DNA of 64,000 nt, from contig NW_003314296.1 in NCBI RefSeq assembly GCF_000143415.4, forward strand, positions 1,091,858-1,155,857, given 5' to 3'. Source of the stretch: Selaginella moellendorffii. Lineage: Eukaryota > Plantae > Lycopodiophyta. The stretch's first letter is position 1, and each line of letters starts with the position of its first letter. The translations under genes were made by a program, and so were the position numbers. Under the pieces are notes generated by a model that saw only the letters and a program-made list of their open reading frames with translations, was not told the origin of the DNA and did no database searches. Of this stretch, positions 8,726 through 41,849 are shown piece by piece.

Positions 8726-8728
8726 CTT

Positions 8729-11161: not shown

Positions 11162-11255
11162 GGCACTAGAATGAGTGGAGAACAGTAGAGGTTACCTATG
11201 TCTGCCCGCCATGGCTGGAGCTACATTGTCCAAGCCCTAAGCATTCCAAAATATT

Positions 11256-11329
11256 TGGCCCATGCAGGTTTCGAACCTGCGACCTTGGCGTTATTAGCAC
11301 CACGCTCTGACCAGCTGAGCTAATAGGCC
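11256..11329 (-). tRNA. tRNA-Ile(AAT)
   Basis: Reverse complement GGCCTATTAGCTCAGCTGGTCAGAGCGTGGTGCTAATAACGCCAAGGTCGCAGGTTCGAAACCTGCATGGGCCA; all stems pair. Confidence 0.95.
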
Positions 11330-11426
11330 TTACAGATTGACTAATATCTCTTAAAAATAATAACATCGGCCGTTGGCCTTACGTTGACTTTTACCAACTT
11401 CAAAGAATTTTAGATTTCAGATCAAG

Positions 11427-12824
11427 TCAACCAGAGGTTGAGCTTTTAATTTTGTAGCTTACATCTTCTCCAGATGAAGCGCTAGGACTAGGAGTGCTCT
11501 CCAAATCCAAATCGATCGCCTCGGACTCGGAGCAGGAAGAGCCCGTTGGCTCGTCGTCGTCGGACATGGTTGCACCCTTCTCGGCCATATCTTCGCCATC
11601 TGTCTCGTCCGATGAACCTTCTTCGTCTGAAGAAGACCAAGAGCTTGGTGTCCTGCTCCACGGCGGGCTGGTGCACACAACCTCCTCCTGGCCATCCACA
11701 ATCCCCAGCTTCTGCATTTTGCGACACAGCCTCTCCAAACGAATTTGCACAGACTTCGCGCCACCACGGCACGGAACGTCCATCTCCTCCTCGAACACCA
11801 CCTGAGGATCACAGGACTTGTGCGTCCAGTGCCTCCTCGCAAGCGCAGCCACCTCCGCCGCTCCCCCTTGAATCAGCTGCTGCTTGAAGAAGCCAAACAG
11901 CTCCTCGTCTTCCTCCTCGTCCTCCACCTTGCAGAAGTAAGCCGGGAGAAAGAAAGAAGTGGCCAAGCTCTGCACGGTCCCCGTCTTGGCCCCGTCCCAG
12001 TCCAGAATGCACTTGACATGTCCCGATGCCGGATCCACCAGGACTTGGGTGGGTCCAAAGTCGGGGTGGTGAAGAAAAAAGCCGCTCCCCTCGCGAGATT
12101 CTTGGAACTCGTCCAGCCACCTGAGCAAAATAGCCGCGTTTGCCCGTATCGATTCGCCATACCTGCGGCTGTTTCCGTGCAGCACCATCAGCCCTCCAAT
12201 GTGGTTCCTGGCGTACTCCTTCCACGACGAGTAAGGCCCGGGGCTGAGAGCCCCCACGTCCAGCCCGCGCTCCATCGCCTGGGACACCGGACTCTGCGGT
12301 TCCGGTCCCACGTGGCACGCCCCGGCACAGTCGACCGCCATGCCCCCCATCGAATCCAGCGGGCGGTGGTAGAGCCGGATGGTGATGCCTGCCAAGTCAG
12401 CGAGCACGGTCTTCTTCCACTCCACGCTGGCGCCCTTCCTCCACAGGTCCCACGCCGGCACGCCCTCTGCCACCGGCATAACAGTGAGGTGGGATTTGCC
12501 GCGTGGCGTGTAGGGCAGCGGTGGCGATGCCACGTGGACGGGCCCTGCCACGACCGTCTGTATGCCCAGCCCCGACAGGAAGAGCGTCGCGGCGTAGCCC
12601 GAATCCGCCAGTGCGCTTGTGATGCGGTTCTTCTGACCTGCGAGTGGGAGTCGAATGGCGACGCGCTGATCATCTTTGTGCGCGTCGAGCACAAGATTCC
12701 AACCCCCTATCCCTAGAATGCCGGTAAATTGAACCGCACAACCCAAAATTCTAGAAACCATCCTCTCAAGTTGAGAGGGCATGCAAAGGAAACTCTCAAA
12801 TATCACGTCCCTCAGCTCCGCCAT
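11427..12824 (-). CDS. APH/choline-kinase-like phosphotransferase (protein-kinase-like fold) with acidic Ser-rich tail, intronless
   Basis: GGWN loop, VAIRLP, GPYSSWKEY, FFLHHPDFGPTQVLVD (HxD loop), KCILDWD. Confidence 0.8.
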   Translation of the reverse strand: MAELRDVIFESFLCMPSQLERMVSRILGCAVQFTGILGIGGWNLVLDAHKDDQRVAIRLPLAGQKNRITSALADSGYAATLFLSGLGIQTVVAGPVHVASPPLPYTPRGKSHLTVMPVAEGVPAWDLWRKGASVEWKKTVLADLAGITIRLYHRPLDSMGGMAVDCAGACHVGPEPQSPVSQAMERGLDVGALSPGPYSSWKEYARNHIGGLMVLHGNSRRYGESIRANAAILLRWLDEFQESREGSGFFLHHPDFGPTQVLVDPASGHVKCILDWDGAKTGTVQSLATSFFLPAYFCKVEDEEEDEELFGFFKQQLIQGGAAEVAALARRHWTHKSCDPQVVFEEEMDVPCRGGAKSVQIRLERLCRKMQKLGIVDGQEEVVCTSPPWSRTPSSWSSSDEEGSSDETDGEDMAEKGATMSDDDEPTGSSCSESEAIDLDLESTPSPSASSGEDVSYKIKSSTSG

Positions 12825-13013
12825 CCCTCCAAACCCTAAATGCTATTTGCCCTGTTTCATTAAAGCTGTCTCTAAAGGATCGAACCTGACGTCAGCGCTT
12901 TACAGTCGCATAAAACCTTTTACAATTAAAGGTTATCCTACTGCTCTTTGGGCTGAATCTGATCGGGAGAATCACTTTGGTTTGTACAACAATCAGCTAA
13001 CAAAAAAAAAAAA

Positions 13014-13100
13014 CACCTGATGTGCAAGCAGGTACTCTCTAAGCAGAAACAAATAGATTGCCACCTGATGTGAAAGGAGGTACTCTTTAAGCAGAAACAA
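13014..13100. repeat. Tandem duplication, 48-bp period
   Basis: CACCTGATGTG(C/A)AAG(C/G)AGGTACTCT(C/T)TAAGCAGAAACAA at 13014 and 13062. Confidence 0.8.
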
Positions 13101-13196
13101 CTATCAGTTAGCAAATAGCTAACAAAAAACAAAACACAAACTTTGCCAGAAACAACTATCCATATGCTATATCCAACCAATTACATTAATGTTTAA

Positions 13197-13217
13197 GGCC
13201 TAGTCAGACATAAGCCA
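13197..13217 (+). pseudogene. Internally deleted tRNA-Ile remnant
   Basis: AATGTTTAA|GGCCTA-GTCAGA-CATAAGCCA keeps the tRNA ends and both flanks seen at 3978-4100. Confidence 0.65.
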
Positions 13218-13269
13218 TACCTGTTTCTATTTAACGAGGAAAGGGAAAAGCCTTTTTTTTTGCTTCGAG

Positions 13270-14424
13270 ATGTTGGCTGGGCTGCGCGTTTGCCTCGCCT
13301 TTTTGTTTCCTGAGAGTTTCGAGTGTGACGAGCTACCTGACGAGTGCGTATGCCGGATCTTGGCGTGGCTCCCCATTCCAGACCTTGTCCGCTGCAAGGT
13401 TGTATGCAAGCGCTGGAAGTCACTCATCGAGGATGCCACTCGCTGGAGAAGCTTGCCGCGGTTGCATGAGTCGTGGTTTGTAGACAATAGTTCCATTCCC
13501 TGTCGTATCTTGGCCACTAGTAATTCTCCCCACAGGGCTCGCCATCTTAAGCTGCCCTTGCACTTGAAGAATAGAGGTCCTTGGGGTGAAGGACGTTGCA
13601 GGTTTAGGATATTTGCCGACTCGTCCTGCGGCCTGGTGTGTGGCTATTTTGTGAATCTCCAGAGACACCACCTTCCTTATTACATGGTTGGGAATCCGAT
13701 CACCGGGAACTGGTGTTGCCTCCCCGAGCTCCCAGTGAACGAAGTCACAAGGAAAGAGGGGAAGCTGCTTGTGGATCCATGCACAGGGTACTTCAAGGTC
13801 CTGGTGTTTCTCCCTGCAGAATTTGATCACTACTGGCTATTCAATTCGCTCAGTAGGGAGTGGCGGCACTGCCAGTTTACAAGCAAGAAGAGCATTGATG
13901 ACCTCGCTGCGGATGACAAGGGACCATGGCTCGGATCCAGTATGTTTGCATTACCTAACAGGCACTCGCTAAAGATCACTGGTGGTCGGGTTGATCTTCT
14001 TTACGTGGCTGTGTTTGATCAGGTTTCAGGTTGCTATGACAGGGTCAAGGTGAAGTTTCCAAGCAATCTTTTCTGTTGTGGGCTGCCTTGTATTGTAGAT
14101 TACAATGGGAGGTGGATTCTTGTTTCGTCAACTATAAGTGGTTGTTATAAGGTGTCTGCTGCTGCATGGGAACTCAACAGGGAGACATCAGATTGGAAAC
14201 TTTTGAGTGAGGTTTACATGGGTGACTTGGTGAAGAATGGCTCCCTTGAGTTTGAGTATTTTGTTGTCAAGCATTCCGTTGTTATGCGACCAAGCATGTT
14301 ATCACTCTCACCACCGATGGCCTTCTTCTTCAAGAATAATTTATGGACTAACTGCAGCAAGTATAACTATAAAACGGCCTTCATGCTCACGCCAGATTTA
14401 TTTTTCAAAGCATGCTCTATATAA
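13270..14424 (+). CDS. F-box protein, intronless, 384 aa
   Basis: LPDECVCRILAWLP F-box; SSCGLVC and VGNPITGNW..LP typical of plant F-box-associated propeller domains. Confidence 0.9.
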   Translation: MLAGLRVCLAFLFPESFECDELPDECVCRILAWLPIPDLVRCKVVCKRWKSLIEDATRWRSLPRLHESWFVDNSSIPCRILATSNSPHRARHLKLPLHLKNRGPWGEGRCRFRIFADSSCGLVCGYFVNLQRHHLPYYMVGNPITGNWCCLPELPVNEVTRKEGKLLVDPCTGYFKVLVFLPAEFDHYWLFNSLSREWRHCQFTSKKSIDDLAADDKGPWLGSSMFALPNRHSLKITGGRVDLLYVAVFDQVSGCYDRVKVKFPSNLFCCGLPCIVDYNGRWILVSSTISGCYKVSAAAWELNRETSDWKLLSEVYMGDLVKNGSLEFEYFVVKHSVVMRPSMLSLSPPMAFFFKNNLWTNCSKYNYKTAFMLTPDLFFKACSI

Positions 14425-16164
14425 TAATTTTTTATCGGCCTCCATTTCTCCGTGCATCTCTTCTTTGATGCCTCGCAGGCCTGGATGGCAAGAAGAGAGG
14501 AAAAAAACAAAATAAAACATCCCAGAAGGGCCGTTTGAATTGGCGAACTCTTCGGCCACTCGAAGAAGGATAGTGGATTATTCTTATAGAGAGAGCACGC
14601 TTTATGGTAGTAGGCACCTAAAAATTATTAGCAAAAATAAGTAGAAAACAAACGTAGAAAGAAGCATATGCCATAGTGCATTCACTATTGCAATGTAGAA
14701 CATCGCATACATAAGCGTTTGCATACTAGCAATCTGAAACTGATAAAACACAGCAAGAGTCCTGAGTAATAAAGTAAAAAATAAATCAATTTGTACCTCT
14801 CCTGACTGTGAAAAGAACTCCTAGAAGACCTTTGACAGCTAAGTGATCGCATGCACTGACAGCCCCACTCACCACACTCAACACCTAATGTGAAACAAAT
14901 TAGACATAAATTTGAACATCACACCACAATTAGCTTTGCTGTTGAACATCCCCGAAACAACAGCCCAGCTTTCTTCGTTATCATGTGTGTCCCCGCTTTC
15001 TCCCTTTGTGTGAACAACTCGAATGTTGTTTGGGCCAAGGTGCATTGTCACCTTGACCCGCTCTCTCATCGTATTCCCCTCGCCTTGAGCACGCACAGCC
15101 TCCATGTTCACCTCCATCACCTTCTCATGCCCCCCGGCCAGATAGCTAGGGCTGCCTTACCTCTAACTGGTCCTAGCGCTGTTAGATGTGCCCACCACCA
15201 TGTGGCACTCTATCGCCTCAAACCGGTACCAGTCCTGCATGGCATGCCTTGGTGCCATCAGATGTGGCCACTGCCATGAATCAAGTTGAAGTAAACAGTA
15301 ATCTAAATATGGCACTTTGAAGAGGGAAAAATTGAAATTGGTTGTTCATATGTATATTTCTATATTCTATTCAATCAAACTTGTTTTTCTTGTTGTCAGA
15401 AATTGTGTTTCTAATGACATCAATAGTTTCAATCCTATTGTAAAATATGTCTTTCAAATATCTATTGAATAGTTGATTATTAATTTACATGCTTACTCCA
15501 AGAATTGTAAACTTGGAATCCATAGTTGATGCACTTTAACAATATAATAAAATAAATTAAAACTACAATTATTTGAAAAACTTATTTTTTAAAATTCATT
15601 TTGAAAGTGTTCCATTATTTTGTAATTCCCCACAGTAAAAAATGCAAGATCGTCTTCTTTATTAATGTAAGCAACTAAAAGGGAACACTTGAGAAACAAG
15701 TAAAATTCAAATATAAAAAGTAAGGCCCACGAATAGAGGGAAGGGGCCATGAGTTATGTTTTGATACATATCCAAATGTACTAAAAACAGTTATTAGGAA
15801 TTGAAGAATACTTTTCATGGTGACATAGATTCTCCACTCAGTTTTGACTATGCTATCATAGCAAACAATAGTCTTTAGGACTTAGAATTAATATGTTAAT
15901 TGATAATAATAACAAAATTAGGATACAAATTAGAGTGGTCAACAAACACCATCCACGTGTCAAATATTCAGTATGGGCACCTTGCCAGTTAGCCATTTGC
16001 GTATTTTGAAGACTCAAAAACAACCCCACAACAAACTTGCAAACTTGTTTGCACAGTTTCATGTTTCTTTTATTATTGGGACTGCCAAAACAAAATATAA
16101 ATAGATAAATGCACCAATTTTCAACATGTCACTTTTTTAACATGTATATATATATCCTTCCTCA

Positions 16165-21499: not shown

Positions 21500-22620
21500 T
21501 AGAGAGCTGTGATTCTCAATAGAGATATAATTCCAAGCATGTTTGCTTTGACACCATAACTAAAGACTTGTTCGATTAGCAAGGAAGAATGAATGCTTTG
21601 GAGCTGCTTGTAACTCTCGGCTTCCAAATAAACTGAGAGCAACAGCCTCGTCAAGATGCCTCATGGGACGTATATGTGCATGATACTGGTCCAAGACGCA
21701 AGCCTTGTGTTCCAGGAGATCACTTTCTTGCTGAGCATCGGAAAGAAAAGAGTGTATTTGCGACCTCCAGATGCCCGTTTAAGGCAAATGTAGTAATCGT
21801 ACCAAATCGGTGGCGTCTTTGATGCTCCAGCACTTCTGGCACATCTATAGAGGAGATTGAAACAAAGCGCTTATATCAGAGACTGGATGACACGGTGCAT
21901 CCTCCTGCCGTGAGCCAAATCTCGCACAATCTCAGCTGCTGCTCGATCTAAAGAGCTCCTCTTGACTCACTAGCACAAATCCTACGCATCAGGCAAAGCT
22001 TCAATGAGGATTCTCCAAATGCCGCCATTCTTTCATCAGTCTCAACCAACCATCATGGCCCGTTTACACATCCTACTGTATCATGAAGCTCTTCAGGTAA
22101 AGATGGTTAATCTGCTCCGATCCATCTTGTCCAAAGATGCACCAAGAGAAGCAAGGAATAATCACAACACACAAGGAAAGGAGAAAGAAACTAATGAGTG
22201 CTCTGGCTCGAGAACATGCAGTCGATCAAGCTATGCTCCAGCAGGAGCGGCGCGATCAACTGTATCACACTCCTGCTTGCGCGCAGGACAGAGATCGATC
22301 CTGTGACTTTCTGCTCCGGAAACAGACGCTCTATCCACTGAGCTACAAGCGCTTTACAAGCACTTTCTAAGCCAGATTTTTGAATTTTATCCGGCGCTGT
22401 CACTTCTTGCGATGCTTTCCCGGCGATCAGCCGGTGCATTCCCAGATGCCGCATGTTTTGAGCCCTAGATAATCTCTTGATAACTTCTTGACAAGCTGAG
22501 AGCATTGTAAGAGAACCCGTGTAGATTTTCCTGCCTTCTTCCACGTTTGAGCACGCGGAGATGGAGCTCACAGACAGCCGCTTGGGTGAGTCAAGCTTTT
22601 GGCTAACTAGAGTCAACGGC
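21500..22620 (-). pseudogene. Highly degenerate PLS-type PPR pseudogene
   Basis: Remnants ISACSNVEEGRKI, KKVISWN, SWTSIMHIY, with many stops and frameshifts. Confidence 0.55.
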
Positions 22621-22859
22621 TATATTGACCACAAGAACATTCGCTAGCATCTTTGACTGATCATTTGTGTTAGTTCGGCCGATGGTTTCTAGGATTTTGA
22701 GCCCGCCTTGGAACCGGTCCAGCCCGAAGAAGACAATGTATACCACTGAAGAAGACGATGGACGTGCGATAGTGCATCGTACTCGCCTTATGTGCCCTTG
22801 CAAATTCCTTGGTGCTAGCTGTGGACGCGCCATTATCATTCTTTCTATCTATCAAGGCG

Positions 22860-27697: not shown

Positions 27698-28435
27698 ATG
27701 ATGGCTCTCAAGCGCAAAGCTGGCGAGGATGAAGCGTGCATCGCGAACAAGAAGGTGTGTGGGGGTGTAGGAGTCAGATTAGGAAAGCCATGGCAGAAAT
27801 GGGCCATTACCATTTGTACTCGTGAGCGAGGACTTGATGAAATAAAAGCATCTTCTCCTTGGAATGTATTCACTGATGGTTCCTTCGATAAAGAGTCGCT
27901 CTCGGCAGGGTACGGCGTCTACTTCCCGTCTGCAGAGGAGTCCCACAAAGGGACGGGCATGGCTGTGCAAATCCCGCAGGAGAACGGCTGGTGCAAAAAC
28001 GGGAACCCTATCGTCGACAGCCTCATCGTGTCTTCGCTCAACATGGAGGTTCTTGCGATACACGACTCCATCGCGGCGGTGCAGCTGTACAGGGCTCGAG
28101 GTTACTGGCAGTCCAACAAGCTGAATATCTACACGGACAGTTTGCAGTCGCTGAAGCTGTTGCAGTTTGCGCAGTGCCGGCCTGAGCACCCCGACTGCAT
28201 CCAGCTCAAGCCGCTCCTGCAGTGCATCGTTGACGCGGCAGCAAAGAGCGGGATGGAGATCCGGCTGTGCAAAGTCAAGGCGCACGACAAGGTATATGAG
28301 AATAATGTAGCGGACGGGCTCGCCAGGAGAGGGCGCCAACTCGAGGGGCGGAAGATCCAGTGGTTCCAGGTAGAAAGGTCTGCTAAGTCGACCAGTGATT
28401 GTGAAATTGTGAAATATAGTGAGATTAAAGTGTGA
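27698..28435 (+). CDS. Stand-alone ribonuclease HI, intronless
   Basis: FTDGS, AGYGVYF, MEVLAI, IYTDS, KVKAH, NNVADGLARRG give the full D-E-D-H-D set. Confidence 0.85.
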   Translation: MMALKRKAGEDEACIANKKVCGGVGVRLGKPWQKWAITICTRERGLDEIKASSPWNVFTDGSFDKESLSAGYGVYFPSAEESHKGTGMAVQIPQENGWCKNGNPIVDSLIVSSLNMEVLAIHDSIAAVQLYRARGYWQSNKLNIYTDSLQSLKLLQFAQCRPEHPDCIQLKPLLQCIVDAAAKSGMEIRLCKVKAHDKVYENNVADGLARRGRQLEGRKIQWFQVERSAKSTSDCEIVKYSEIKV

Positions 28436-28559
28436 TACATTAATAGCTATTTCTCTCCCTTTTTTTTGAAAAGGCTTGTTAACTACCAAACATTCAATAT
28501 AGTGATACATTAATAACTATTTCTCTTCCTTTTTCTTGAAAAGGTGTTAATTTTCTATA

Positions 28560-29375
28560 AAGTCACTATCCCAAATCTAAATCCAGTGTGCTGCAGAAAA
28601 TAGAGAAAAACAAGCTTTACCATGGATTTGTGAACTTAAGTTTGTCACCACAAGCACCATTTTGCTGTAAAGTCATTGTGTAATTAGTTCATTTGTCACG
28701 AAAAGCAGAACTTTGCTAAAAGTCACTGCGCAATTAGTACTAAGTTTGAATCCAAAGAGCTACAGAAAATAGAGAGTTCCAAGCTTTACCATGGCATTGT
28801 GCAATTCTAGCTCATCATGACAAGTAACATTTTGTTATAAAGTCATCAAGTGATTAGTCCAAAGTCTGAATCTAGCAAGCTACAAAAAATAAAGACGATC
28901 AAGTTTTACCATGGCCTCATGCTTGTCACCACAAACAGGGAGAAGCAAGCCTTACCATGGTGTTGTGCTCTTTCAACTTATCACCATAAGTAGCATTTTG
29001 CTTTAAAATCACTGTGTGATTAGTCTTAAGTCTTAATTCAATGAGCTGCAGAAAATAAAGAAGAGCAAGCTTTAATATGGTCCTATGCAATCTAACTCGT
29101 CACCACAAGTAGCATTTTGTTGTAATGTCACCACCAGATTAGTCTGCTCATCATGACAAATAACATATTGCTCCCAAATCTAAATCCAACAAGCTGTAGA
29201 AAATAGGGAAAAGCAAACTTACCATGGCTTTGTGCACTTCAAGCTCATGACCACAAGTAGTATTTTGCTATAAAGGCACAAAATGATTAGTCTAGAGTCT
29301 GAACTGAGCTACAAAAAATAAAGAGCAAGCCTTTATTATGGCCTCGTGCATTTATAGTTTGTCACCACAAGTATT
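28560..29375. repeat. Degenerate ~120-bp tandem repeat, about 7 units
   Basis: CAAGCTTTACCATGG-like core near 28611, 28780, 28900, 28946, 29066, 29214, 29326, each followed by a GTCACCACAAGTAGCATTTTG-like block. Confidence 0.85.
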
Positions 29376-29559
29376 TGTAAGACATAAATCCCAAAGTGGA
29401 ACCCTCATGTGGTAATGGCCAAAGGAAAAGCCTAATGAGTGAACACATTTAAATTAAAAACTCCAACTTAAAAAGTTGAGAGCTAGAGTGGAACTTTTAA
29501 AGAAATGCTTAAAGAATGAGCATAAAGCAAGTGGGGAATGAGTTTTGAAAAAGGCACAA

Positions 29560-29765
29560 AAAAATCAAAATAGAATTTGAGATGGAGTCTAAGATGGAGT
29601 CTAAGGAGTTTGAGATGAAACTCGAGATGGAGTCCGAGGCTAAATTTAAAATTGGATCCAAGATTAAAATTGAGTTTGGGACTAGGATTGGGACTAAAAT
29701 CAGGACCGAGACCAAATTTGAGTTCAAGTTCATGTTTAAGTCTAAATTCGAGTCCGAGGGTGAAA
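29560..29765. repeat. Degenerate hexamer-period simple repeat
   Basis: GAGATG/GAGTCT/GAGTTT/GAGTCC/AAGTTC units in 6-nt phase. Confidence 0.7.
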
Positions 29766-29933
29766 GCCCAAAATAATCATCTCCCAAGACCCTAAGGGAT
29801 TTAATGAATCCCTATAAGATAATAAAAAGATAGAACTAATTTGGTTAGAAAAAGCTAATGTGATAAAGAAGGTTATATTTACGTAGTGATATAACCACTA
29901 AGGAATCTAAAGCTACACTAGCATTCTTTCTGT

Positions 29934-30254
29934 CTATCCGGCCGCTAGAACCCTAAATCCCAAGATCGCCACCAGGAGATCCCATGCCTGCTTCGCTGAC
30001 GTCGTGTGCCACACCTGCATTAGTTGCCTGTCCTCGAGATGGAGCAAAATATTCGCTCGTGCTCTCGCGTCCTTCTTCTCAAACTCCAGGCGATCTTCCT
30101 TCCTGGCGGATTCTTCCGGCCGGGCCTCCGATCCGCTCACCACGCCCCACTGATCGTGTAGCACCAGCAGCATTTGCATCCTCATCTTCCAGACGTGGAA
30201 TCTGGCGCCGCCGAATCGCTCCACCAAGAACATCGACCCTTGCTCGTCCCTCAT
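29934..30254 (-). mobile_element. Ty1/Copia gag N-terminal fragment, open 106-aa ORF
   Basis: MRDEQGSMFLVERFGGARFHVWKMRMQMLL..KKDARARANILLHLEDRQLMQVWHTTSAKQAWDLL; no pol or paired LTRs seen. Confidence 0.8.
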
Positions 30255-32654: not shown

Positions 32655-33796
32655 ATGGGCAGCAATCGGTGAGTGGTATTTCTCGTTTCTTCTCGCATCT
32701 CTAACTCCTGGATCGATTTTGCGCGATCGATCGAAGATGGTGGTCGAGAGAGACGATTGCCGTGGTGACTGGCAGCAACAAGGGGCTTGGATTGGCCATA
32801 GCTCGCGGTCTGGCCATGGAGGGCGTGACGACGATCCTGACTGCCAGAGACGAGCTCCGGGGCTGGGAAACCGTGGACTCGCTCAAACAAGACGAGAGAA
32901 TCGATCCATCGCTGATCCACTTCCACCGGCTGGACGTGACAAGCGCCTCGTCGATCCAGGAGTTTGCGAGATGGATCAAAACCAAGTTTGGTGGCTTGGA
33001 CATTTTGGTAAGAACAAGCTCGCGAGCTCACTGCTTAGTTTGATCCATTGTCAAGGTGAACAACGCGGGAATCTCGGGAGCTACTCCGGGAGCTCTCACA
33101 AACTTGGAGAACTCCAAAGCTGTGATTGACACGAATTACCTCGCAGTTCGAAAGCTCACAGAGAGTTTGATCTCGCTCATGCGTCCATCCTCTCACGGAG
33201 CCCGCATCGTCAACGTGAGCTCCGGAACAAGCCGATTGGATGTAAGCCTCCTTCTCCATCTTGAATCCTCCAAAGATCTTACAAACTTCGCCTTCCAGGC
33301 ACTGCAAAACCAAGCTCTCGCCCATAAGATCTCAAACATTGACGAGCTCTCGATGGAAGCCATCGACGAGATAGTCAAGGAGTACCTGGAGGACGTCGAG
33401 CACGGACGGGTCATCGAGAAGGGCTGGTCCAGGATGTTTGGAGCTTACGACTACTGCTTCTCCAAGATAGCTCTCAACGCCTACACGCGAGTTCTGGCGA
33501 GAGATCTCTCCAAACTTCCCGAGGGTCACAAGATCTTCGCCAACTGCATGTGTCCGGGGCTGGCCAGCACGGACATGTCCAGGAACAACGGGCACTCGGC
33601 CGAGGTTGGAGCGGACACGGCCATTTGGTTGGCGTTGCGGCCGGCGATAGAGTCGAGCTCGGGGCGATTCTTCTCCAAGAGGAACGACGTTGGGTTTGAT
33701 CGAATCCCCTTCTACATAGAAAACGTTGCCTACACTTCCGATCTGGAGGACTTCATGGAGTGTATCAGGAAGGTGGAAGCAGCAGCGAACTCGTAA
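32655..33796 (+). CDS. Short-chain dehydrogenase/reductase (carbonyl reductase / neomenthol dehydrogenase-like), 4 exons
   Basis: RWWSRETIAVVTGSNKGLG, VNNAG, VNVSS, YCFSK, CPG. Confidence 0.92.
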
Positions 33797-33904
33797 AAGC
33801 TGGAGAGAAAAAACAAAATGAAAGGAGAGTTAGAACCGAAAAAAAAAATGAACTTTTGCTTGGAAGACTTTCTCTGCCTGTAAAGGTCTCAAAGGTAAAT
33901 GTTA

Positions 33905-35030
33905 AGACTCTACAAGCACTGCCGCTCCCCCTCGTCCTTGAGCCTGCTCGCGAGAACTGCCTTCAGCGCCTTCAACATCTCGTTCGGTCGGCCTCCTCAT
34001 CGAGCTTGAACTCGAAGTTTGCCTCGGCGAAGTCCCTGTAGTAGTCGTTCACCTCCGCGAGATCGTTTTCCAGCAGCGTCTACATGTAGCACTCCTTGCA
34101 GTCGCACATGAAATTCAGGCTCTTGTGCTTGAAAGGATGGCCGCCCTTGATGAAGCTCTTCTCCAGCGTCGATGTCTCGGGCCGCGAAGTAGCAGGTCAC
34201 CTTTAATGTCCGTTTTGCAGAGGAATGGTTGATGAAGCTCGGTGTTGCGAGGTGGAAGAAGCCGCTCCGATTGTAGGACGCCTTGCTGACGATCTCAAAG
34301 GTTCGCTTCACTTCAATGCCTTCCGCCGCTGCTGTCAGTGCAAATCGGCCAATTCTCGGGAGTTGTCCAGTTCGGCCGGAAGGTTTCCATGCCGGGGACT
34401 TCTCGCTCGTCGCCCGCCGCCTCGCAAACGAGGCTGAGAAGCTGCTTGTATACCCGTGGAGATTTCATAGCCATGTCAAGCAGCCGAGCAGCAGCGTCTC
34501 GGTCCCAAGCCGACTCGTTTTCACCCTGCTCGAAGATGACCGCGTTGCTCACGAGCACAAGCTCACCTCGGTTAATCTTTCTCGTCGCAGACGGCCGCCG
34601 GCCACGCTTCTTGCTCTGGTCTCCACACATCTTCACCTCCACCGGGCCAACGTACTCGGCAAGCACTGGAAACTTTGGCTGTTTCTTGCTCTTGCCGTTG
34701 GAATCGCTCCACGCGCGGCTGTCCGGCTTTGCCTGGCAAGTTTCTGGGACTTCTCGAATAGCTAGTCGATGGTTTGGTCGAAATCTCTCAAGAGCTGCCA
34801 CGACCATTCGTAGCGATGGGGCTTGAGCAAAGCAGACGACTTCCGATACACGCTCTTGAGATGGCTGGGATCAGCGCCACTAGCCTGTGATGCGCTCAAG
34901 GCATAGGCTTGAGCAGCGGCCTCAAAGCTCTCGTCTTTGAAGAGCATGTTCCCTGTCGCGGGGTTCATACCTGCATGGAGGCGATCGTCGCCAAAGAAAG
35001 AGAGCACCTCCACGTTCGCCGGATTGTCGA
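33905..35030 (-). pseudogene. Truncated, frameshifted tandem duplicate of the TPR-SET gene
   Basis: LAEYVGPVEVKMCGDQSKKRGR and PSFINHS segments in different frames, with deletions. Confidence 0.88.
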
Positions 35031-35046
35031 CATACTAACCTCGAAA

Positions 35047-37188
35047 TTAAACCGTGATTATTTCCGTGCCTCTCTCGACGATGGCCTTGACAACACGATG
35101 ATCGTCCTGTCTGCCAAGCTTGATCTCCCACTCTCGCTCGATCACGCTCCATGCCGCGTCCTTGTCCCGTGCAAACTCCACCAGAAGTTTCATGTAAGCC
35201 AGATTCGTGTCGCTGGCCGCCGAGAACTTGTGCATCGCGGCCATGATCACCTCCGCCGCTGGGACGCCACCGCCAGGCACCGGCACCGCCGCCCCACTCT
35301 CCACCCTCTGGTAATAGTAGAGGTATAGCGACCAGTGGATCGCTCGCAAGCACTGCCGGTCCTCCTCGTCCTGGAGCTTGCTCGCGAGAACGTCTTCCAG
35401 CTTCTTCACCACCTTGCCAGCCTCGGGATCCTTCTTGAACTGGAACTCAAAGTTTGCCTCGGCGAGGTCCCTGTAGTAGCCGTTCACCTCCACGAGATCT
35501 TCATCCAGCAGCGTCTCGAGGTGGCACTTCTTGCAATCACACTCGAAGGATGCGAGCCTCTTGCGCCTGTAAGGATGGCCGCTATTGATGTAGCAGTGGA
35601 CGAGCTCTTCTCCGGCGGCGATGTCGCGAGCAGCAAAGTAGCAGGCCGAAGTTCCTAGCACCGTCTGGCACACGTTTGGAACGCAGGAATGGTTGATGAA
35701 GCTCGGGAGGAACCACGTCGCGACGTAGATGAGGCCTTTCGAGTACCTCGGATTGAAGGCGGCCTTGCTGACGATCTCACAGGTTCTCTGCACGTCGATG
35801 CCTTGAAGCGCCTCTCTGCCGGTGCTATCAGTGCTGCTAATCGGCCAAGCCTCGGGAGTTGTCCAGTTCGGCTGGAAGATTTCCATGGCAGGGACTTCTC
35901 GCTCGTCACCCGGCACCCCGCAAACGAGGGTGAGGAGCTGCTTGTATGCCCGTGGAGATTTCATGGCCATGTCGAGCAGCCGAGTAGCAGCGTCACGGTT
36001 GCAAGCCGACTGGTCGTCACCACGCTCAAAGATGACCGCGTTGCTCACGACCAGAAGCTCGCCTCGGTTGATCTTTCTTGTCGCAAACAGCCCCCGGCCA
36101 CGCTTCTTGCTCTGGTCTCCACACATCTTGATCTCCACCGGGCCAACGTACTCGGCAAGCTCTGGAAACTTTGGTGGCGCTTTGGTCTCGCTGTCCGAGG
36201 CATCGCTCCACGCACGAAGAAAGCTGGAAATCTCCTGGGCAATGCTGCTGCTGTCCCGGCTTTGCCAGGCGAGCTTCTGGCACTTGATGTAGAGCTCCTG
36301 GATCGCTTGGTCCTTCCCAGCGAAATCTTTCAAGAGCTGGCACGACCAGTCATAGAGATGGAGCTTGAGCAAAGCCAATGCCTTTCGGTAGAGACTCTTG
36401 AGATGGTTGGGATCCATCTCGAGAGCGGCACTGGCAGCATTGATGCAAGCCTCAAATCGCCCCAGCTTGAGGTAGCACGCGGCTTGGTTGGCAAGCGCTA
36501 GCATTCGATCGCGGCTATCATCCTGTGAGGTGATGATCAAGCCATAGGCTTGAGCTGCGGCCTCAAAGCTCCCATCTTTAGTAAGCTTGTTCCCTTCCAT
36601 CCGAATCGTGGAGTGGCTCATACCTCGAAATCTCTGGAGCTGATCGTCGCCAAGGAAAGAGAGCACCTCCACATTGGCCGGATTATCGAGCGCGATGAGC
36701 GAAAGAGTGCCGGGACCAGTTCCTGGATCATCGAGAAGCACCGCCAGATCAAGATTCACACTCAGATCGTCCAGAGGCCTCGCCAGCGTCGGCTCCTTGA
36801 CCGCTACCCTCGCCCCCCTGGGAAATTTCGACCGGACCTCCACGTCCGTGGCACTGCTCGTCGCCGCATGCTTGATCGCGAGCAGCACCGATTCCCCGCT
36901 AGAATCCTCAAGCACCGTGAGTACCTGGACGCCGCCGTCGATCTTGAGCGCATCGGCAGCGAGAAATCCGTGAAGAACACGCCCGGTCGCGCGCGCTCCC
37001 GGCGCGAGATCGCCGATCCGGACAGGAGCTAGGGCGGAGATCGCCGCGGAGGGAATGCCGTGATCATCTTGTACCCGCTGGAGCAGCATCGAGACCAGGA
37101 ATGTAGCCGGATCGAGGCACGCCACATCCTCCGCGAGGGATGGCGTCGCGTCGCTGATCACTGGCGCGCGGGCGAGGCGGAGGATCAT
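35047..37188 (-). CDS. TPR + SET-domain lysine methyltransferase with extra N-terminal domain, intronless
   Basis: TPR helices (ALANQAACYLKLG, KSLYRKA), RGRGLFATRKINRGELL, FINHSCVPN, GEELVHCY, post-SET CDCKKC. Confidence 0.9.
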   Translation of the reverse strand: MILRLARAPVISDATPSLAEDVACLDPATFLVSMLLQRVQDDHGIPSAAISALAPVRIGDLAPGARATGRVLHGFLAADALKIDGGVQVLTVLEDSSGESVLLAIKHAATSSATDVEVRSKFPRGARVAVKEPTLARPLDDLSVNLDLAVLLDDPGTGPGTLSLIALDNPANVEVLSFLGDDQLQRFRGMSHSTIRMEGNKLTKDGSFEAAAQAYGLIITSQDDSRDRMLALANQAACYLKLGRFEACINAASAALEMDPNHLKSLYRKALALLKLHLYDWSCQLLKDFAGKDQAIQELYIKCQKLAWQSRDSSSIAQEISSFLRAWSDASDSETKAPPKFPELAEYVGPVEIKMCGDQSKKRGRGLFATRKINRGELLVVSNAVIFERGDDQSACNRDAATRLLDMAMKSPRAYKQLLTLVCGVPGDEREVPAMEIFQPNWTTPEAWPISSTDSTGREALQGIDVQRTCEIVSKAAFNPRYSKGLIYVATWFLPSFINHSCVPNVCQTVLGTSACYFAARDIAAGEELVHCYINSGHPYRRKRLASFECDCKKCHLETLLDEDLVEVNGYYRDLAEANFEFQFKKDPEAGKVVKKLEDVLASKLQDEEDRQCLRAIHWSLYLYYYQRVESGAAVPVPGGGVPAAEVIMAAMHKFSAASDTNLAYMKLLVEFARDKDAAWSVIEREWEIKLGRQDDHRVVKAIVERGTEIITV

Positions 37189-37227
37189 CGCCTTGTGGAG
37201 CTTAATCTTACATTAATATATGAGACG

Positions 37228-37359
37228 TTGACCAGGTCAACATAGGTCAACATCATTTATTAATAAGGTTTAAGATGAAGCCGGGCAATTCAAATCTGTT
37301 GACCAATGCTGCCAGCAGACTAACAGTCCACGAGGGTCAACCTGGGTCTTCACAGTCAA
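37228..37359. promoter_or_regulatory. W-box cluster upstream of the TPR-SET gene
   Basis: TTGACY or its reverse complement at 37228, 37235, 37245, 37299, 37335, 37354. Confidence 0.55.
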
Positions 37360-39102
37360 CAGCCTTTGGTAGTTATTCCCGAAGAGCGATTGCTGCCAGT
37401 CGGGCTCGTTATAATCGGCCTCGTTGAAATACGCCCACGAACCCGGTGTGAGATCCCTCAACTGGGCATTTGCGGCGGTCAACCGATCCATCCTCTCGCG
37501 GATCGACGCTCCAATCGCCGGCGAATCCAGCGAGCTGGGCGAGGATGAACTAGGCGAGCTCGACGAATTGGAACTGGAAGGGCTCGCGAACGAGGAGGAA
37601 TCATCCCAGGAGCTCTCGGCGGTGATGTGCCACAACGCTTGCCTCCAAGCGGGATTCACCGCGACTGCGTCTCCAGCCCCCGCCACCGCCGCGCCGCCGC
37701 TCACCGCCACGCCCAGGATCGCGTTGCTCGTCGCGTTGGATTGCAGCAGCGTGACGAGCGCGTCGCTGATCTCGCCACCGGAGCTCTCGATCGCGCTGGC
37801 GGGGACGAGGCGGGAGATGAGCACTCGATTCGTGCCGAGATCGTCGTTGCAAATCCCCCTGGCGCTCGGGTAGAACGAGCACATCGTGTCGTTGTACCAC
37901 TCCAGGAAGCTGGGATACGATCGCACGCCGCCGCCCACCGCGCGGACCGTGGCGTTGTGACGTGCGATCCACTCCAGGAACGATCCAAAGCTCTGGTCGT
38001 GGAACGCGGTGGTCTGGTTGAGCGCGTGGTAGCGGAGAGTCAGCGAGGTGCCGCCCATCACGAAGTAGCCCGCCCAGCCCTGGCGGTACAGCGCGGCGCT
38101 AAGCTGGGTAAACTGGCCTATCAGCTGGCGGTAGCTCCCCACGCCGCTGGCGGCAAGCACGTGTACCGCCGAGAGAATGTTGCTCGGCGCCGGGAACGTG
38201 CGATGTACCGCCGCGGTAACCACGCCGAAGGTGCCGCCGCCGCCGCCGCGTAGCGCCCAGAAAAGGTCCCGGTTAACGCACCGGTTGGCGTACCGCACGG
38301 TACCACCGGGCGTCACAATCGTGAACTGGAGCACGTTGTCGGCGGCGAGGCCGTACGCCGCGGGGCTGTGCCCACCGCCCTGTACGTAACCGCCGGCGGT
38401 AGCCACCGAGGAGCTAAGCGCGCCCACGACGAGCTTCCCTTGGGCGTGGGCGGCGGTGTAGAGCTCGCGCCACTGGACGCCAGCGCCCACCTCCACTGCC
38501 GAGGCGCCGCTGGAATGGGGATCGCAGCCCTCCTCGACGAATTCCTCGCTGAATTGGATGCTCTTGAGATTGTGCGTCCAAATGCTGAGCGATCCACGCG
38601 CGAAGCTCCGCCCGAGGTAGTCATGGCCCGTGCTCTTCACCACGATCCGCAAGAAATGCTGCCGGGCGAAGTGGATGGCGGCCTGGACCTGCGAGATGGA
38701 GGAGACGTTGACAGCGAGCACCTGGGAGCACGATGACGCCGAGGGCAGCGCGGTACCGTTGGGCGGGAGCGGGCAGCTCTGGGTGCCGTAGGCCTCCCAG
38801 TTTGGGTGCTCCACTTGGGTGGAGCGCCACGCACTGTCGTGCCAATTGGCCCGCGCGGTGGCGCACTGCGCGGTACCGTCGGCGTCATAGCAGGGTGACG
38901 CTGGTGGGCGGACCTGGATGAGCGCGCCGCCCACTGTGAGATTGAATCGCTCCCAGTGCTTGGCGTTTGGGAAGCACGATTGATCGGCAGTGCAGCGGCA
39001 TCTAGTGGCGGCGATTGCAGCGGGCAAGAGGAGGAAGAGCGCGAGGAGGAGGGATTTGCGAGTAGATCGATCACACATTGCTTCGTTCCACGCAAGGATC
39101 AT
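37270..39102 (-). CDS. Secreted FAD-linked oxidoreductase (VAO/BBE family), intronless; start at 39102 or 39078
   Basis: Signal peptide; KSTGHDYLGRS, GGYVQGGGHS, DLFWALRGGGGGTFGVVT, AYFNEAD..W..FG.NYQRLL..K..VDP. Confidence 0.9.
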   Translation of the reverse strand: MILAWNEAMCDRSTRKSLLLALFLLLPAAIAATRCRCTADQSCFPNAKHWERFNLTVGGALIQVRPPASPCYDADGTAQCATARANWHDSAWRSTQVEHPNWEAYGTQSCPLPPNGTALPSASSCSQVLAVNVSSISQVQAAIHFARQHFLRIVVKSTGHDYLGRSFARGSLSIWTHNLKSIQFSEEFVEEGCDPHSSGASAVEVGAGVQWRELYTAAHAQGKLVVGALSSSVATAGGYVQGGGHSPAAYGLAADNVLQFTIVTPGGTVRYANRCVNRDLFWALRGGGGGTFGVVTAAVHRTFPAPSNILSAVHVLAASGVGSYRQLIGQFTQLSAALYRQGWAGYFVMGGTSLTLRYHALNQTTAFHDQSFGSFLEWIARHNATVRAVGGGVRSYPSFLEWYNDTMCSFYPSARGICNDDLGTNRVLISRLVPASAIESSGGEISDALVTLLQSNATSNAILGVAVSGGAAVAGAGDAVAVNPAWRQALWHITAESSWDDSSSFASPSSSNSSSSPSSSSPSSLDSPAIGASIRERMDRLTAANAQLRDLTPGSWAYFNEADYNEPDWQQSLFGNNYQRLLTVKTQVDPRGLLVCWQHWSTDLNCPASS

Positions 39103-39171
39103 CTTCTTTCTTCCTTTCGGCTTGGATCTTTTTAAAGCGTTCTCCCGCGCCATGACATTAGAATGATCTAT

Positions 39172-39301
39172 CGACCATTGACTAACGACATTGAACAATG
39201 TACAGTGGACTCGCTGACCATCGTTGACGAGTGACCATTGACTAACTAGTCAACGACATTGATCAAAGGGACCACAGTGGACTCGCTGACTAGCGTTGAC
39301 T
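39172..39301. promoter_or_regulatory. Tandemly duplicated W-box-rich element upstream of the FAD oxidoreductase
   Basis: GACCATTGACTAAC..ACAGTGGACTCGCTGAC..CGTTGAC twice; TTGACT/AGTCAA at 39178, 39238, 39248, 39296. Confidence 0.6.
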
Positions 39302-41849
39302 AGTAGGACTCCACGTAAATGTTGGAGAGTAGGACGTGGGAGGAGCCACACTCTTGTGGAGTTCGCTCAAGAACAAGCTCCTCGAGAACCCTCGCGCGAT
39401 CAAAGTCGTGGTGGATCTTACACGCCCCCAGCAGCGTCGTCCACGCCAGTGGCTCCGGCTCGAATGGCATCGTCTCCACGAGCTCCTGCGCTTGATCCAG
39501 CCAGCCCGCGCGGCCGAGAAGATCCACCAGGCACACGAAGTGATCCATCTGGGGCGCGATCTCCCACTCGGCGGCCATGGACGTGAAGCACTCGTGGCCG
39601 CTGGAGACGAGGCCCGAGTGGGAGCACGCCACCAAGATGGTGATGAAAGTCACGTCGTCCGGCTCGGCACCGTCGAGCTCCATCCTCCTGTACATTTCCA
39701 TGGCTTCCTCGGCGTGGCCGTGCTTCGCGAATCCCACTATCATCGCCGTCCAGGACACCAAGTTCTTATGCTCCATCCTGTGGAAGATCCGGCTCCCTTC
39801 GTCCAGGAAGCCACACTTGGCGTGTAAGTTCACGATCGCGTTCTCCACCACAATGTTCTTCCTCGTCATCGCCTCCAAGTTGGCGTTGGAGTGGAGATGG
39901 CGGAGGAGTTCCTTGGCCTGGTTTAAGTCTCCCAGGTTCGAGCACGCTGCTAGAACCGCGGCGATGGCTCCTTGATCCGGCTCCACTCTTTCCGTCTCCA
40001 CCATTCTTTTGTAAAGATCGATGGCTTGCCTTTCGCGTCCAGCTTGAGTGTATGCCGTGAGGAGGATGTTCCAGCTGACCACCGTTCGGGAGCTTTCGTC
40101 CATGGACTCGAAGAACTTGCTCGCTTCCTCCAGGCTGCCACACTTTGCGTACATGTTGAGCAGTGAGTTCTGGACGAGCTCCGACTTTATCATCCCGGTC
40201 GCCACTGCTCGGCTGTGGATCTCTTTGCCGTCTTCAAGGTCGAAGCACGAGCCGAGAACAGCAGCCAGAGTGACGCTGTTTGGTTCTATCTCCCCGTCGC
40301 GAAGCATGCTCTTGTAGAGTCCCATGGCTTCGCGGTGATAGCCTTCCTGAGTGTAAGCTGCGATCATCGACGTCCAGGCGACCACGTCTCTGAGCTCCAT
40401 GCTATCAAACACCCGACGAGCTTCTTCGGCCCTGTGGCACTTCGCGTACATGTTGACGACCGCGGTCTCCAAGTTTCTATCCGGAAGAAGACTCTCAGCT
40501 CTGGCTCGCTGGTGGATCGCCCGGCCGTGTTTCAAAGCTCCAACGTTGGCACACCACCCGAGCAAGCAAATCAAAGTCACTGCGTTGCCACGGACTCCTT
40601 GAAGCTCCATCTCCCGGAACAAATCCAGTGCCTCCGCAGCCTGGTCTTTCCCACCAAAGTGTGCGTAAGCTCCGAGAAGAGCGTTCCATGACATGATGTT
40701 CTTCTCTTCCATCCCGTCGAAAACTTTCCTGGCGTCCAGCAAGCCGGCACAGTTCCCATACATCGAGACGAGCGCAGTCCCGAGCGCTGGATCCCGCAGA
40801 TCCAATGAAGTCACTCGGGAGTGAACTCTTCTGCCTTGATCGAGATCGCCCAGGACCGAGCAAGCACTGAGAACGCTTACGTAAGTCACGCTGTTTGGTT
40901 CCACGTCCATCTTGCTGTAAAGCTCCACAGCGTCTCTAGCTCTCCCGCTGTGAGTGTAAGCCGTGATCATCGACGTCCAAGTGATCACGTCCCTGCGCTC
41001 TATCCCATCGAAAACTTTTCTCGCCTGATCGATCCTCCCGCATCTCGAGTACATGGTGATGAGAGCGTTCCCGAGAGGACCATCCGGTTGGATCTTCAAA
41101 GCAGCAATCCTTGCGTGGATTCTTTCCCCGAGCTTGAGATCGCCCAAGCTGGAAATCGCTGTGAGGACTGCCACGAATGTGATCTTGTTGGGCTCTACAT
41201 CCATTCTCTGATAGAGCTCCACTGCCTTGTGAAAATGCCCAGTCTGGGCATACGCTGTGAGCATCGCAGTCCAGGACACCACATTCTTGCGGGAGATCCC
41301 ATCGAAAACTTTCTCGGCCTCTTGCAAGCTCCCACACCTGGCATACATCGTCACAAGGGCCGCCTCTAGAGAAAGATCCGATTCCCTCCTAGACGATCGG
41401 ATTCGCGAGTGGACCGATCTTCCCTCGGCCAAGAGCTGCGAATTTCCACAGGCGCCCAGCACGCCCAGCAGCGTCACTCGATTCGGCTCCACGCCCTCGG
41501 AATCCATCCTCTGATAGAGATCTAGCGCCTCTCTTCCCTGTCCGGCCTGAGAATACCCCGAGACCATCGCATTCCACGACACCACGTCCTTCTTGGCCAT
41601 GGAATCGAATGTGGATCGCGCTTCTTCCATGCTGCCGCACTGGCGATACATCTGGATGAGGAGATTTCCCAAGAACGTGTTGCCGCCATAGCCATGGCGG
41701 AGGAGATGGCGGTGGACGCGGCGGCCCTCCTCGATCGCCTTGGCGGCGCCGCAGCATTGGATGAGAGACGCGTAGAGTGATGATCCTCCCACCTGGATCG
41801 CTTCCAGGCGCTCCAATCCATCCTTGATGGAAAGAAGGGTTCTACGCAT
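39300..41849 (-). CDS. PLS-class PPR protein ending in an E domain, no DYW; probable organellar RNA-editing factor
   Basis: P-L-S triplets (DVVSWNAM, VEPNRVTL, ALVTMYARCG); C-terminal WTTLLGAC..VLLSNIY. Confidence 0.93.
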   Translation of the reverse strand: MRRTLLSIKDGLERLEAIQVGGSSLYASLIQCCGAAKAIEEGRRVHRHLLRHGYGGNTFLGNLLIQMYRQCGSMEEARSTFDSMAKKDVVSWNAMVSGYSQAGQGREALDLYQRMDSEGVEPNRVTLLGVLGACGNSQLLAEGRSVHSRIRSSRRESDLSLEAALVTMYARCGSLQEAEKVFDGISRKNVVSWTAMLTAYAQTGHFHKAVELYQRMDVEPNKITFVAVLTAISSLGDLKLGERIHARIAALKIQPDGPLGNALITMYSRCGRIDQARKVFDGIERRDVITWTSMITAYTHSGRARDAVELYSKMDVEPNSVTYVSVLSACSVLGDLDQGRRVHSRVTSLDLRDPALGTALVSMYGNCAGLLDARKVFDGMEEKNIMSWNALLGAYAHFGGKDQAAEALDLFREMELQGVRGNAVTLICLLGWCANVGALKHGRAIHQRARAESLLPDRNLETAVVNMYAKCHRAEEARRVFDSMELRDVVAWTSMIAAYTQEGYHREAMGLYKSMLRDGEIEPNSVTLAAVLGSCFDLEDGKEIHSRAVATGMIKSELVQNSLLNMYAKCGSLEEASKFFESMDESSRTVVSWNILLTAYTQAGRERQAIDLYKRMVETERVEPDQGAIAAVLAACSNLGDLNQAKELLRHLHSNANLEAMTRKNIVVENAIVNLHAKCGFLDEGSRIFHRMEHKNLVSWTAMIVGFAKHGHAEEAMEMYRRMELDGAEPDDVTFITILVACSHSGLVSSGHECFTSMAAEWEIAPQMDHFVCLVDLLGRAGWLDQAQELVETMPFEPEPLAWTTLLGACKIHHDFDRARVLEELVLERTPQECGSSHVLLSNIYVESY

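Follow-up and report, generated by a model that had tools for sequence, protein, structure and literature searches.

A 64,000-nucleotide stretch of nuclear DNA from the lycophyte Selaginella moellendorffii (Viridiplantae), which we call the window and number from its first letter, carries two neighboring intronless genes. One encodes a flavin adenine dinucleotide (FAD)-linked oxidase and the other a protein having OB-fold, TPR and split SET domains. The first-pass annotation of this DNA proposed that both genes are of microbial origin and form a horizontally acquired defense module, wired into a plant pathogen-response circuit by clusters of the W-box motif TTGACY, the binding site of WRKY transcription factors. 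The reading that we consider probable is that the region is an ordinary gene-dense nuclear stretch holding three unrelated intronless minus-strand genes plus one dead gene copy, in which the oxidase would be an old paralogue of a fungus-derived family, the SET gene would be native to plants, the adjacency of the two would be due to chance and the TTGACY clusters, which are real, would perhaps be WRKY sites.

A fungal-type oxidase in lycophytes and ferns

The oxidase gene (37270 to 39153, minus strand) is intronless and its annotated product has 627 residues. The open reading frame (ORF) extends from 37270 to 39198 and contains in-frame ATG codons at 39153, 39102 and 39078, the latter two of which give an N-terminus resembling a canonical signal peptide. 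The gene is documented by this ORF, by Pfam and structure matches, by phylogenetic trees and by RNA. Pfam searches found FAD_binding_4 (PF01565, E 9e-19) together with a C-terminal BBE domain (PF08031, E 3e-11), both above the curated cut-offs. Among solved structures the protein matched 6f72 (E 7e-58) and 6f74 (E 4e-57), with query residues 32-502 and 544-596 aligned, whereas with plant BBE-like enzymes the match (E 1e-14 to 1e-21) was confined to the FAD domain, about residues 125-310. Hence, the resemblance to fungal secreted FAD-linked oxidoreductases rather than to plant BBE-like enzymes, which the first-pass annotation had read from the N-terminal sequence and a GHDYLGRS...SLSIWTHNLK stretch, was borne out over the full length at E 1e-57. 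These alignments place the oxidase in the fungal MtVAO615/713 subclass and outside the classical plant BBE-like radiation.

The two reference enzymes, MtVAO615 and MtVAO713 of Myceliophthora thermophila (PDB 6F72/6F73 and 6F74), have in common with the Selaginella protein an N-terminal Cys-rich extension, a secretion signal and many N-glycosylation sites; the Selaginella oxidase has eight such sequons. The differences are that sequence identity is moderate and that the oxidase is encoded by a plant and carries a low-complexity Ser-rich insert near its C-terminal third (near residue 503, counted from the 39102 start). The classical plant BBE-like proteins (reticuline oxidase, the THCA and CBDA synthases, Phl p 4, AtBBE-like proteins and PpBBE1) resemble the oxidase in having the VAO/PCMH fold, the FAD_binding_4 plus BBE architecture and a covalent histidyl-FAD, but differ in the substrate domain and in the active-site constellation.

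Alignment of the active sites gave a consistent assignment. The histidine of the oxidase TGHDY motif aligns with His157 of MtVAO615 and His159 of MtVAO713, the residues that form the 8-alpha-N1-histidyl FAD link (PMC6017366). At the position of MtVAO615 Cys222, which forms a second, 6-S-cysteinyl link, the oxidase has a serine, as does the monocovalent MtVAO713 (Ser231), and therefore the oxidase is predicted to bind FAD by one link only. A valine aligns with the oxygen gatekeeper Val225, and the glutamate of the YFNEAD motif aligns with the atypical active-site residue Glu519, a glutamate that in MtVAO615/713 replaces the catalytic tyrosine of other VAO-type oxidases (PMC6017366). Taken with the signal peptide and the sequons, these residues lead us to infer that the protein is a secreted, N-glycosylated, monocovalent flavoprotein oxidase. 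It would probably oxidize an extracellular alcohol-type substrate with release of hydrogen peroxide (H2O2). For the fungal MtVAO enzymes a weak activity on ricinoleic acid is all that was reported (PMC6017366).

Relatives of the oxidase were sought by a word-filtered search in which 8000 word-sharing candidates were scored, and the statements that follow refer to the best 120 of the 1764 matches. The best matches outside Selaginella were fungal proteins of 37-41% identity, from Calcarisporiella, Basidiobolus and Mortierella, followed by proteins of ferns, one moss and bdelloid rotifers. The only plants present were Selaginella, Adiantum, Ceratopteris and Ceratodon. No seed plant, no algal member and no plant BBE-like protein appeared among these 120, an absence that a word-filtered search does not make rigorous. 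The nearest Atlas clusters are from Ascomycota, and in the matches listed the family is spread over all fungal phyla plus rotifers. Within Selaginella there are at least 11 distinct paralogues once near-identical copies are dropped, and paralogues of the window gene are distributed over at least eight further scaffolds; ferns have them as well.

Two trees were built, a FastTree phylogeny of 120 sequences and a site-heterogeneous tree of 44 sequences under the posterior mean site frequency (PMSF) model; both are unrooted. In the 44-sequence tree all Selaginella and fern oxidases form one clade (Shimodaira-Hasegawa-like approximate likelihood ratio test, SH-aLRT, 90). The companions of this clade in a larger group (SH-aLRT 97) are Mucoromycota, Basidiobolus, a chytrid and bdelloid rotifers, and the Dikarya clades stand separately; the deep branches of the tree are weak. 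The fern genes have one of the Selaginella copies as their sister, and therefore several of the paralogues are older than the lycophyte-fern split. FastTree had set the window oxidase apart together with one paralogue (P0010); a separate origin for these two was rejected when the site-heterogeneous tree joined them with the other Selaginella and fern copies. The moss oxidase lies outside the Selaginella-fern-fungus-rotifer group, and a single all-plant clade that includes the moss was not rejected (approximately unbiased, AU, test p = 0.35). An independent transfer into the moss is thus supported neither way.

The tree and the distribution of paralogues indicate that the window oxidase is one old paralogue of a family common to lycophytes and ferns and not a local or new arrival, and the proposal of a horizontal acquisition at this locus is given up. 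As for the family, an ancient fungus-to-plant transfer is most likely, being the most economical reading, with a direction and a date that we infer. On this view a fungus of an early-diverging lineage would have passed the gene to an early land plant or early vascular plant more than 400 million years ago, after which the family would have multiplied.

Several points weigh against a transfer. The tree is unrooted and its backbone weak, which leaves the direction of transfer unproven, and the lack of algal and seed plant members comes from the word-filtered search described above. The family could be an ancient eukaryotic one that was inherited vertically and then lost in seed plants, most bryophytes, green algae and most animals. 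Such descent would fit the unresolved backbone, the all-plant clade that the AU test did not reject, the presence of the family in all fungal phyla and in rotifers, and a codon composition that is fully plant-like (GC at third codon positions, GC3, 0.80). However, it demands many independent losses and leaves the best 120 of 1764 matches without an algal or seed plant member. It also sits poorly with a supported group in which the plant clade is joined only by early-diverging fungi and bdelloid rotifers, apart from Dikarya; bdelloid rotifers are known to acquire genes from other organisms. We therefore hold vertical descent to be unlikely and retain an ancient transfer from fungi as the preferred reading.

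High GC content, intronless genes and best matches in fungi would also be expected of fungal contamination or of a misassembly. The locus itself argues strongly against such an artifact. Proteins encoded in the window are 100% matches to S. moellendorffii proteins on a 1.77-Mb scaffold (word-index search). On this scaffold the oxidase is physically integrated, with plant genes on both sides, and both it and the SET gene are embedded among plant-specific genes. The repeat upstream of the oxidase is common to the end of the neighboring PPR gene and runs into its coding sequence. Moreover, ferns have paralogues, as do at least eight further Selaginella scaffolds, and Selaginella RNA covers both the oxidase and the SET gene. 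Contamination or misassembly is hence so improbable that it can be set aside.

Ancient fungus-to-plant transfers into bryophytes and lycophytes have been reported (Richards et al. 2009, as cited in the review PMC12448838). The oxidase family resembles the cases described there in that it is fungus-centered, that the plants among the best 120 matches are all seed-free and that the genes are fully adapted to the plant genome. Full-text literature searches, in texts that did not include Richards et al. 2009, returned no description of this family as a case of horizontal gene transfer into plants.

A native plant SET protein and a decayed paralogue

The gene downstream of the oxidase (35047 to 37188, minus strand) is intronless and encodes a 713-residue protein composed of OB-fold, TPR and split SET domains, as assigned from the ORF, Pfam, sequence searches, trees and a structure model. 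Pfam detected SET (PF00856, E 2e-14) and TPR domains and gave no zf-MYND match. The expected catalytic and post-SET motifs are present: NHSC at residue 499, GEELV at 526 (the GEE..Y motif) and CDCKKC at 550 (the post-SET Cys cluster), all in columns that are invariant in the family alignment. The TPR module matches the TPRs of Hsp70/Hsp90 co-chaperones (the three-TPR type). Among solved structures the SET core best matches SMYD2/3, and only the C-terminal half of the SET domain does so. In SMYD-type methyltransferases a MYND zinc finger splits the SET domain. Because the Selaginella protein lacks this finger, its sequence marks it as SMYD-like but not a canonical SMYD protein. Arabidopsis ATXR1 has likewise been described as SMYD-like without a zinc finger (PMC4521844).

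Other plant TPR-SET proteins share the whole arrangement, that is, the order OB, TPR, split SET, post-SET and C-terminal helical region, with NHSC, GEE..Y and CxCxxC conserved. Examples are a Marchantia protein named MpATXR5 by its source and a Cryptomeria protein named 'methyltransferase FGSG_00040'. Given this domain architecture, the protein is most likely a lysine methyltransferase acting on non-histone substrates, which would dock on partners by means of its TPR and OB modules.

The N-terminal block of the SET protein had been taken as a fungal feature. The block is indeed shared with fungal TPR-SET proteins, but the alignment shows that it is conserved equally in plants. A model of residues 45-192 (window 36613-37056) has the OB fold, with a predicted local distance difference test (pLDDT) value of 85.6. 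The best structural match of this domain was the OB domain of TTC5/Strap (template modeling, TM, score 0.52, E 1e-5). TTC5/Strap resembles the SET protein in that an OB domain adjoins TPRs, but the order of the domains is reversed and identity is 18-19%, such that neither common descent nor common function is implied. Pfam has no family for this N-terminal domain, which is conserved among the TPR-SET proteins of plants and fungi. Recognition of this unassigned block as an OB fold like that of TTC5 is a by-product of the present work.

For the SET protein a word-index search found little, and a word-index profile search built on the SET alignment added no relatives, its matches being for the most part TPR noise. 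An exhaustive search gave 2454 matches. By cluster look-ups the best full-length relatives are all plant proteins: Diphasiastrum (38%), Adiantum, Cryptomeria, Ginkgo, Selaginella paralogues, Ceratodon, Marchantia, Riccia, Calypogeia and Lactuca. In a FastTree phylogeny a clade of 65 sequences (SH 99) holds all of the labeled plant sequences. A mixture-model tree put 24 of 24 plant sequences on one side of a branch (SH-aLRT 81), adjacent to a cluster that contains Micromonas (94). The window gene lies within a Selaginella plus Adiantum clade (SH-aLRT 98), a divergent lycophyte-plus-fern subclade, and the fungal sequence and a dipteran sequence fall elsewhere in the mixture-model tree. The protein is thus nested with homologues from lycophytes, ferns, gymnosperms, bryophytes and angiosperms, with a green-algal cluster just outside. 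These trees argue that the SET gene is a native plant gene whose family is found across Viridiplantae, and its assignment as a fungal-type or microbial gene is withdrawn. Of the foreign ancestry proposed for both proteins, the trees therefore leave a part only for the oxidase, whose Selaginella-fern clade keeps company with early-diverging fungi and rotifers in an unrooted tree; the SET protein falls within plants.

Bdelloid rotifers possess members of both the fungal-type oxidase family and the full-length TPR-SET family, and the dipteran Pseudolycoriella hygida has a TPR-SET protein outside the plant clade. Either family seems liable to occur in animals where it is not expected.

A decayed SET copy lies immediately beyond the intact gene (33751 to 35031, minus strand). 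By tblastn and pairwise alignment, residues 167-667 of the SET protein were located at 35031-33751 in three frame segments, with at least two frameshifts, four in-frame stop codons and a deletion of 33 TPR residues. The NHSC motif has become NHSS and the post-SET cysteines have been lost. The copy has no 5' end: it begins exactly at the DNPANVEVLSF motif, and the OB domain and the promoter are missing. The first-pass annotation had noted a tandem SET pseudogene, and the decayed copy is indeed there. Parts of it, however, are 83-86% identical to other Selaginella paralogues versus 74% to the adjacent SET gene, and the pseudogene is therefore a fragment of an old paralogue rather than a fresh tandem copy. 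Stranded RNA reads, at a depth of about 5, were found on the pseudogene segment 34297-34512. All had G>A at 34419 and loose ends at 34512, and a few connected 34512 to 36136 with 17 other letters between. These reads probably derive from an expressed paralogue or from the other haplotype and not from the pseudogene itself.

Gene adjacency, transcription and the TTGACY clusters

As annotated at first, the oxidase and SET genes are co-directional, intronless and separated by exactly 81 bp (37189 to 37269), and both are on the minus strand. They are also GC-rich as was stated, but this does not set them apart: the GC3 values of the oxidase (0.80) and of SET (0.72) are close to those of the adjacent PPR and Ovate genes (0.71-0.76).

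Linkage of the two families was examined at the loci of a Selaginella SET paralogue, the Diphasiastrum SET homologue and the closest oxidase paralogue, and for an oxidase and a SET paralogue that share another Selaginella scaffold. No oxidase was found within 10 kb of the SET homologues at three loci, and no SET gene was found near the oxidases at two loci; the oxidase and SET paralogue on the same scaffold are 1.36 Mb apart. At the locus of the oxidase that shares a scaffold with a SET paralogue, the annotated 717-residue product fuses an intronless 578-residue oxidase (locus coordinates 9989-11725) with a downstream SWEET (MtN3_slv) gene (12016-12685), which looks like a fusion of gene models rather than a real fusion protein. 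The SET paralogue of that scaffold is flanked by a divergently oriented GMC-type FAD oxidoreductase on one side and, 49 bp downstream on the other, by a gene encoding 616 residues without a Pfam match (locus coordinates 8026-9600 and 12038-13888).

Transcription was checked in untreated RNA and transcriptome-like data sets, with 5951 letters covered. Stranded raw RNA had depths of 0.1-1.3 (sense) over SET, 0-0.9 over the oxidase and 5-12 over the PPR gene, and RNA contigs cover 37256-39107 of the oxidase. One RNA run (X15) contained SET without the oxidase, one transcriptome-like assembly (X5) contained the oxidase without SET and another (X1) contained both. As the oxidase has a signal peptide and the SET protein has none, no direct partnership between the secreted product and its neighbor is expected. 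Since linkage is lacking at the other loci inspected, the RNAs were detected independently and only one of the products is secreted, the adjacency is most likely a coincidence in a compact genome rather than the mark of a co-transferred or co-regulated module.

The proposal that both genes are microbial, were possibly transferred together and form a WRKY-controlled defense module would account for several features at once, namely the fungus-centered oxidase family, the TTGACY clusters directly upstream of both start codons and the architecture, N-terminal block included, that is common to the fungal, rotifer and plant TPR-SET proteins. It conflicts with the position of SET inside the land-plant clade with the green-algal cluster just outside, with the membership of the oxidase in an old multi-copy lycophyte-fern family, with the absence of the pairing from all four paralogue loci inspected, with the different destinations of the two products and with their independent detection across RNA data sets. 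A two-gene defense module thus found neither linkage at other loci nor consistent co-detection in RNA data, and we regard it as very improbable.

The TTGACY motifs themselves merit separate treatment. Over the whole window 62 TTGACY sites were counted, fewer than the 75 expected. The clusters of six (37228-37359) and of four (39178-39301) are there as first annotated, but their placement alters their meaning. Three of the six putative SET promoter sites (37299, 37335 and 37354; 37299 to 37359 by motif scan and ORF) are within the last 30 codons of the oxidase. The other three are in the 81-bp spacer on the minus strand (37189 to 37269), an AT-rich segment of GC 0.36. By motif scan and repeat analysis these three belong to a 10-bp tandem repeat and to a palindrome (TTGACC/GGTCAA), and about 30 bp ahead of the SET start codon there is a TATA-like run. 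The cluster of four upstream of the oxidase occupies the segment that separates the stop codon of the PPR gene from the first ATG of the oxidase (39154 to 39304, minus strand). This spacer consists of a two-copy tandem repeat of 60-72 bp whose distal copy contains the PPR stop codon. Because they come from one tandem duplication these four sites are not independent. Further TGAC cores, some of them palindromic, are present in the same spacer. A transcriptome-like contig covers 39121-39272, and part of the spacer may be PPR 3' untranslated region (UTR) or oxidase 5' UTR.

First-order Markov simulations gave at most four TTGACY sites per 135 bp. In the 144 kb of Selaginella DNA examined, however, there are nine separate clusters of at least three sites, and therefore the real base rate is well above that of the random model. 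One cluster of four sites is inside the coding sequence of an oxidase paralogue, where it results from Gly-Gln codon pairs. No upstream cluster was found at the closest oxidase paralogue or at one SET paralogue, the two loci checked. Two more clusters occur in the window, four sites at 22589-22658 and three at 11337-11430. The latter is in a short spacer between minus-strand ORFs, one of 465 residues without a Pfam match and a PPR gene at 8729-11161, the same type of position as that of the clusters flanking the oxidase.

One observation does not favor a chance arrangement. The six-site cluster is the densest in the 144 kb, both clusters are situated exactly in short upstream spacers and some of their sites are palindromic, all of which fits designed cis-modules and is left unexplained by chance adjacency. 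The clusters could be working W-box modules to which WRKY factors bind, so that pathogens or elicitors would induce the oxidase, the SET gene or both; this reading does not depend on where the genes came from. The six- and four-site clusters were judged to be above every Markov simulation. The TTGACC/GGTCAA and TTGACTA/TAGTCAA palindromes and the 60-72 bp duplication resemble known multi-W-box promoters, the low basal expression is as expected of inducible genes, and a secreted oxidase that would generate H2O2 is plausible as a defense product. Against this, half of the six sites are coding sequence, the other cluster of four arose by a single duplication that may lie partly in the PPR 3' UTR, the genome often has clusters of three or four sites (one of them within a coding sequence), and upstream of two paralogues, the closest oxidase and one SET gene, there is none. 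Moreover, the TGAC core is also bound by TALE homeodomain and bZIP factors. We consider a working W-box module a rather doubtful possibility. The wiring into a pathogen-response circuit, as first put forward, was drawn from motif counts, which coding position, duplication and genomic base rate have weakened. The TTGACY clusters are real and were partly built by micro-duplication, and their sequences may be candidate WRKY sites.

A combined version is distinctly less likely still. A fungus-derived secreted H2O2-producing oxidase, acquired in ancient times, would be under WRKY control through micro-duplicated W-box modules, one of them cut from the tail of the PPR gene, and the SET gene would share this type of switch by convergence of promoters and not by common origin. 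If true, the locus would show, in an early-diverging plant lineage, how plant immunity can take an enzyme of foreign origin into its service.

The surrounding region and the meaning of the oxidase family

The region is gene-dense and has a GC content of 56-62%. The upstream neighbor of the oxidase is an intronless PPR gene of 849 residues (39300 to 41849), on the minus strand like the oxidase, SET and the SET pseudogene. It was assigned from its ORF and from matches to PPR families (E 1e-95), is clearly transcribed (stranded RNA depth 5-12, contig depth about 80) and encodes a typical plant organelle RNA-binding protein. The PPR ORF ends (...LLSNIYVESY, then stop) within an apparent E1-type C-terminal motif (39300-39420), and its stop codon, which the repeat provides, is exactly at the start of the 60-72 bp tandem repeat (39274-39304). 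The tail of the PPR protein may have been truncated by the same event that created the spacer.

Further large ORFs of the window encode a second PPR protein, two F-box proteins, an Ovate-family protein, an SDR and an ABC transporter. There is also an ORF containing RNase H (27698-28435), and AT-rich blocks of GC 31-40% lie at 1-2000, 14001-16000 and 28001-30000. The RNase H ORF and these blocks suggest transposon remnants between gene clusters.

The attractive claim, that of two foreign genes joined in a WRKY-wired module, fails: the SET gene is native to plants, the pair is not kept together at the other loci inspected, and the motifs provide soft evidence. The significance of a fungal origin is instead a property of the whole oxidase family and not of this locus. 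If that origin is true, the family would join the short list of fungus-to-plant transfers that date from the early colonization of land, and seed-free vascular plants would have gained a set of secreted oxidases of the MtVAO615/713 subclass.

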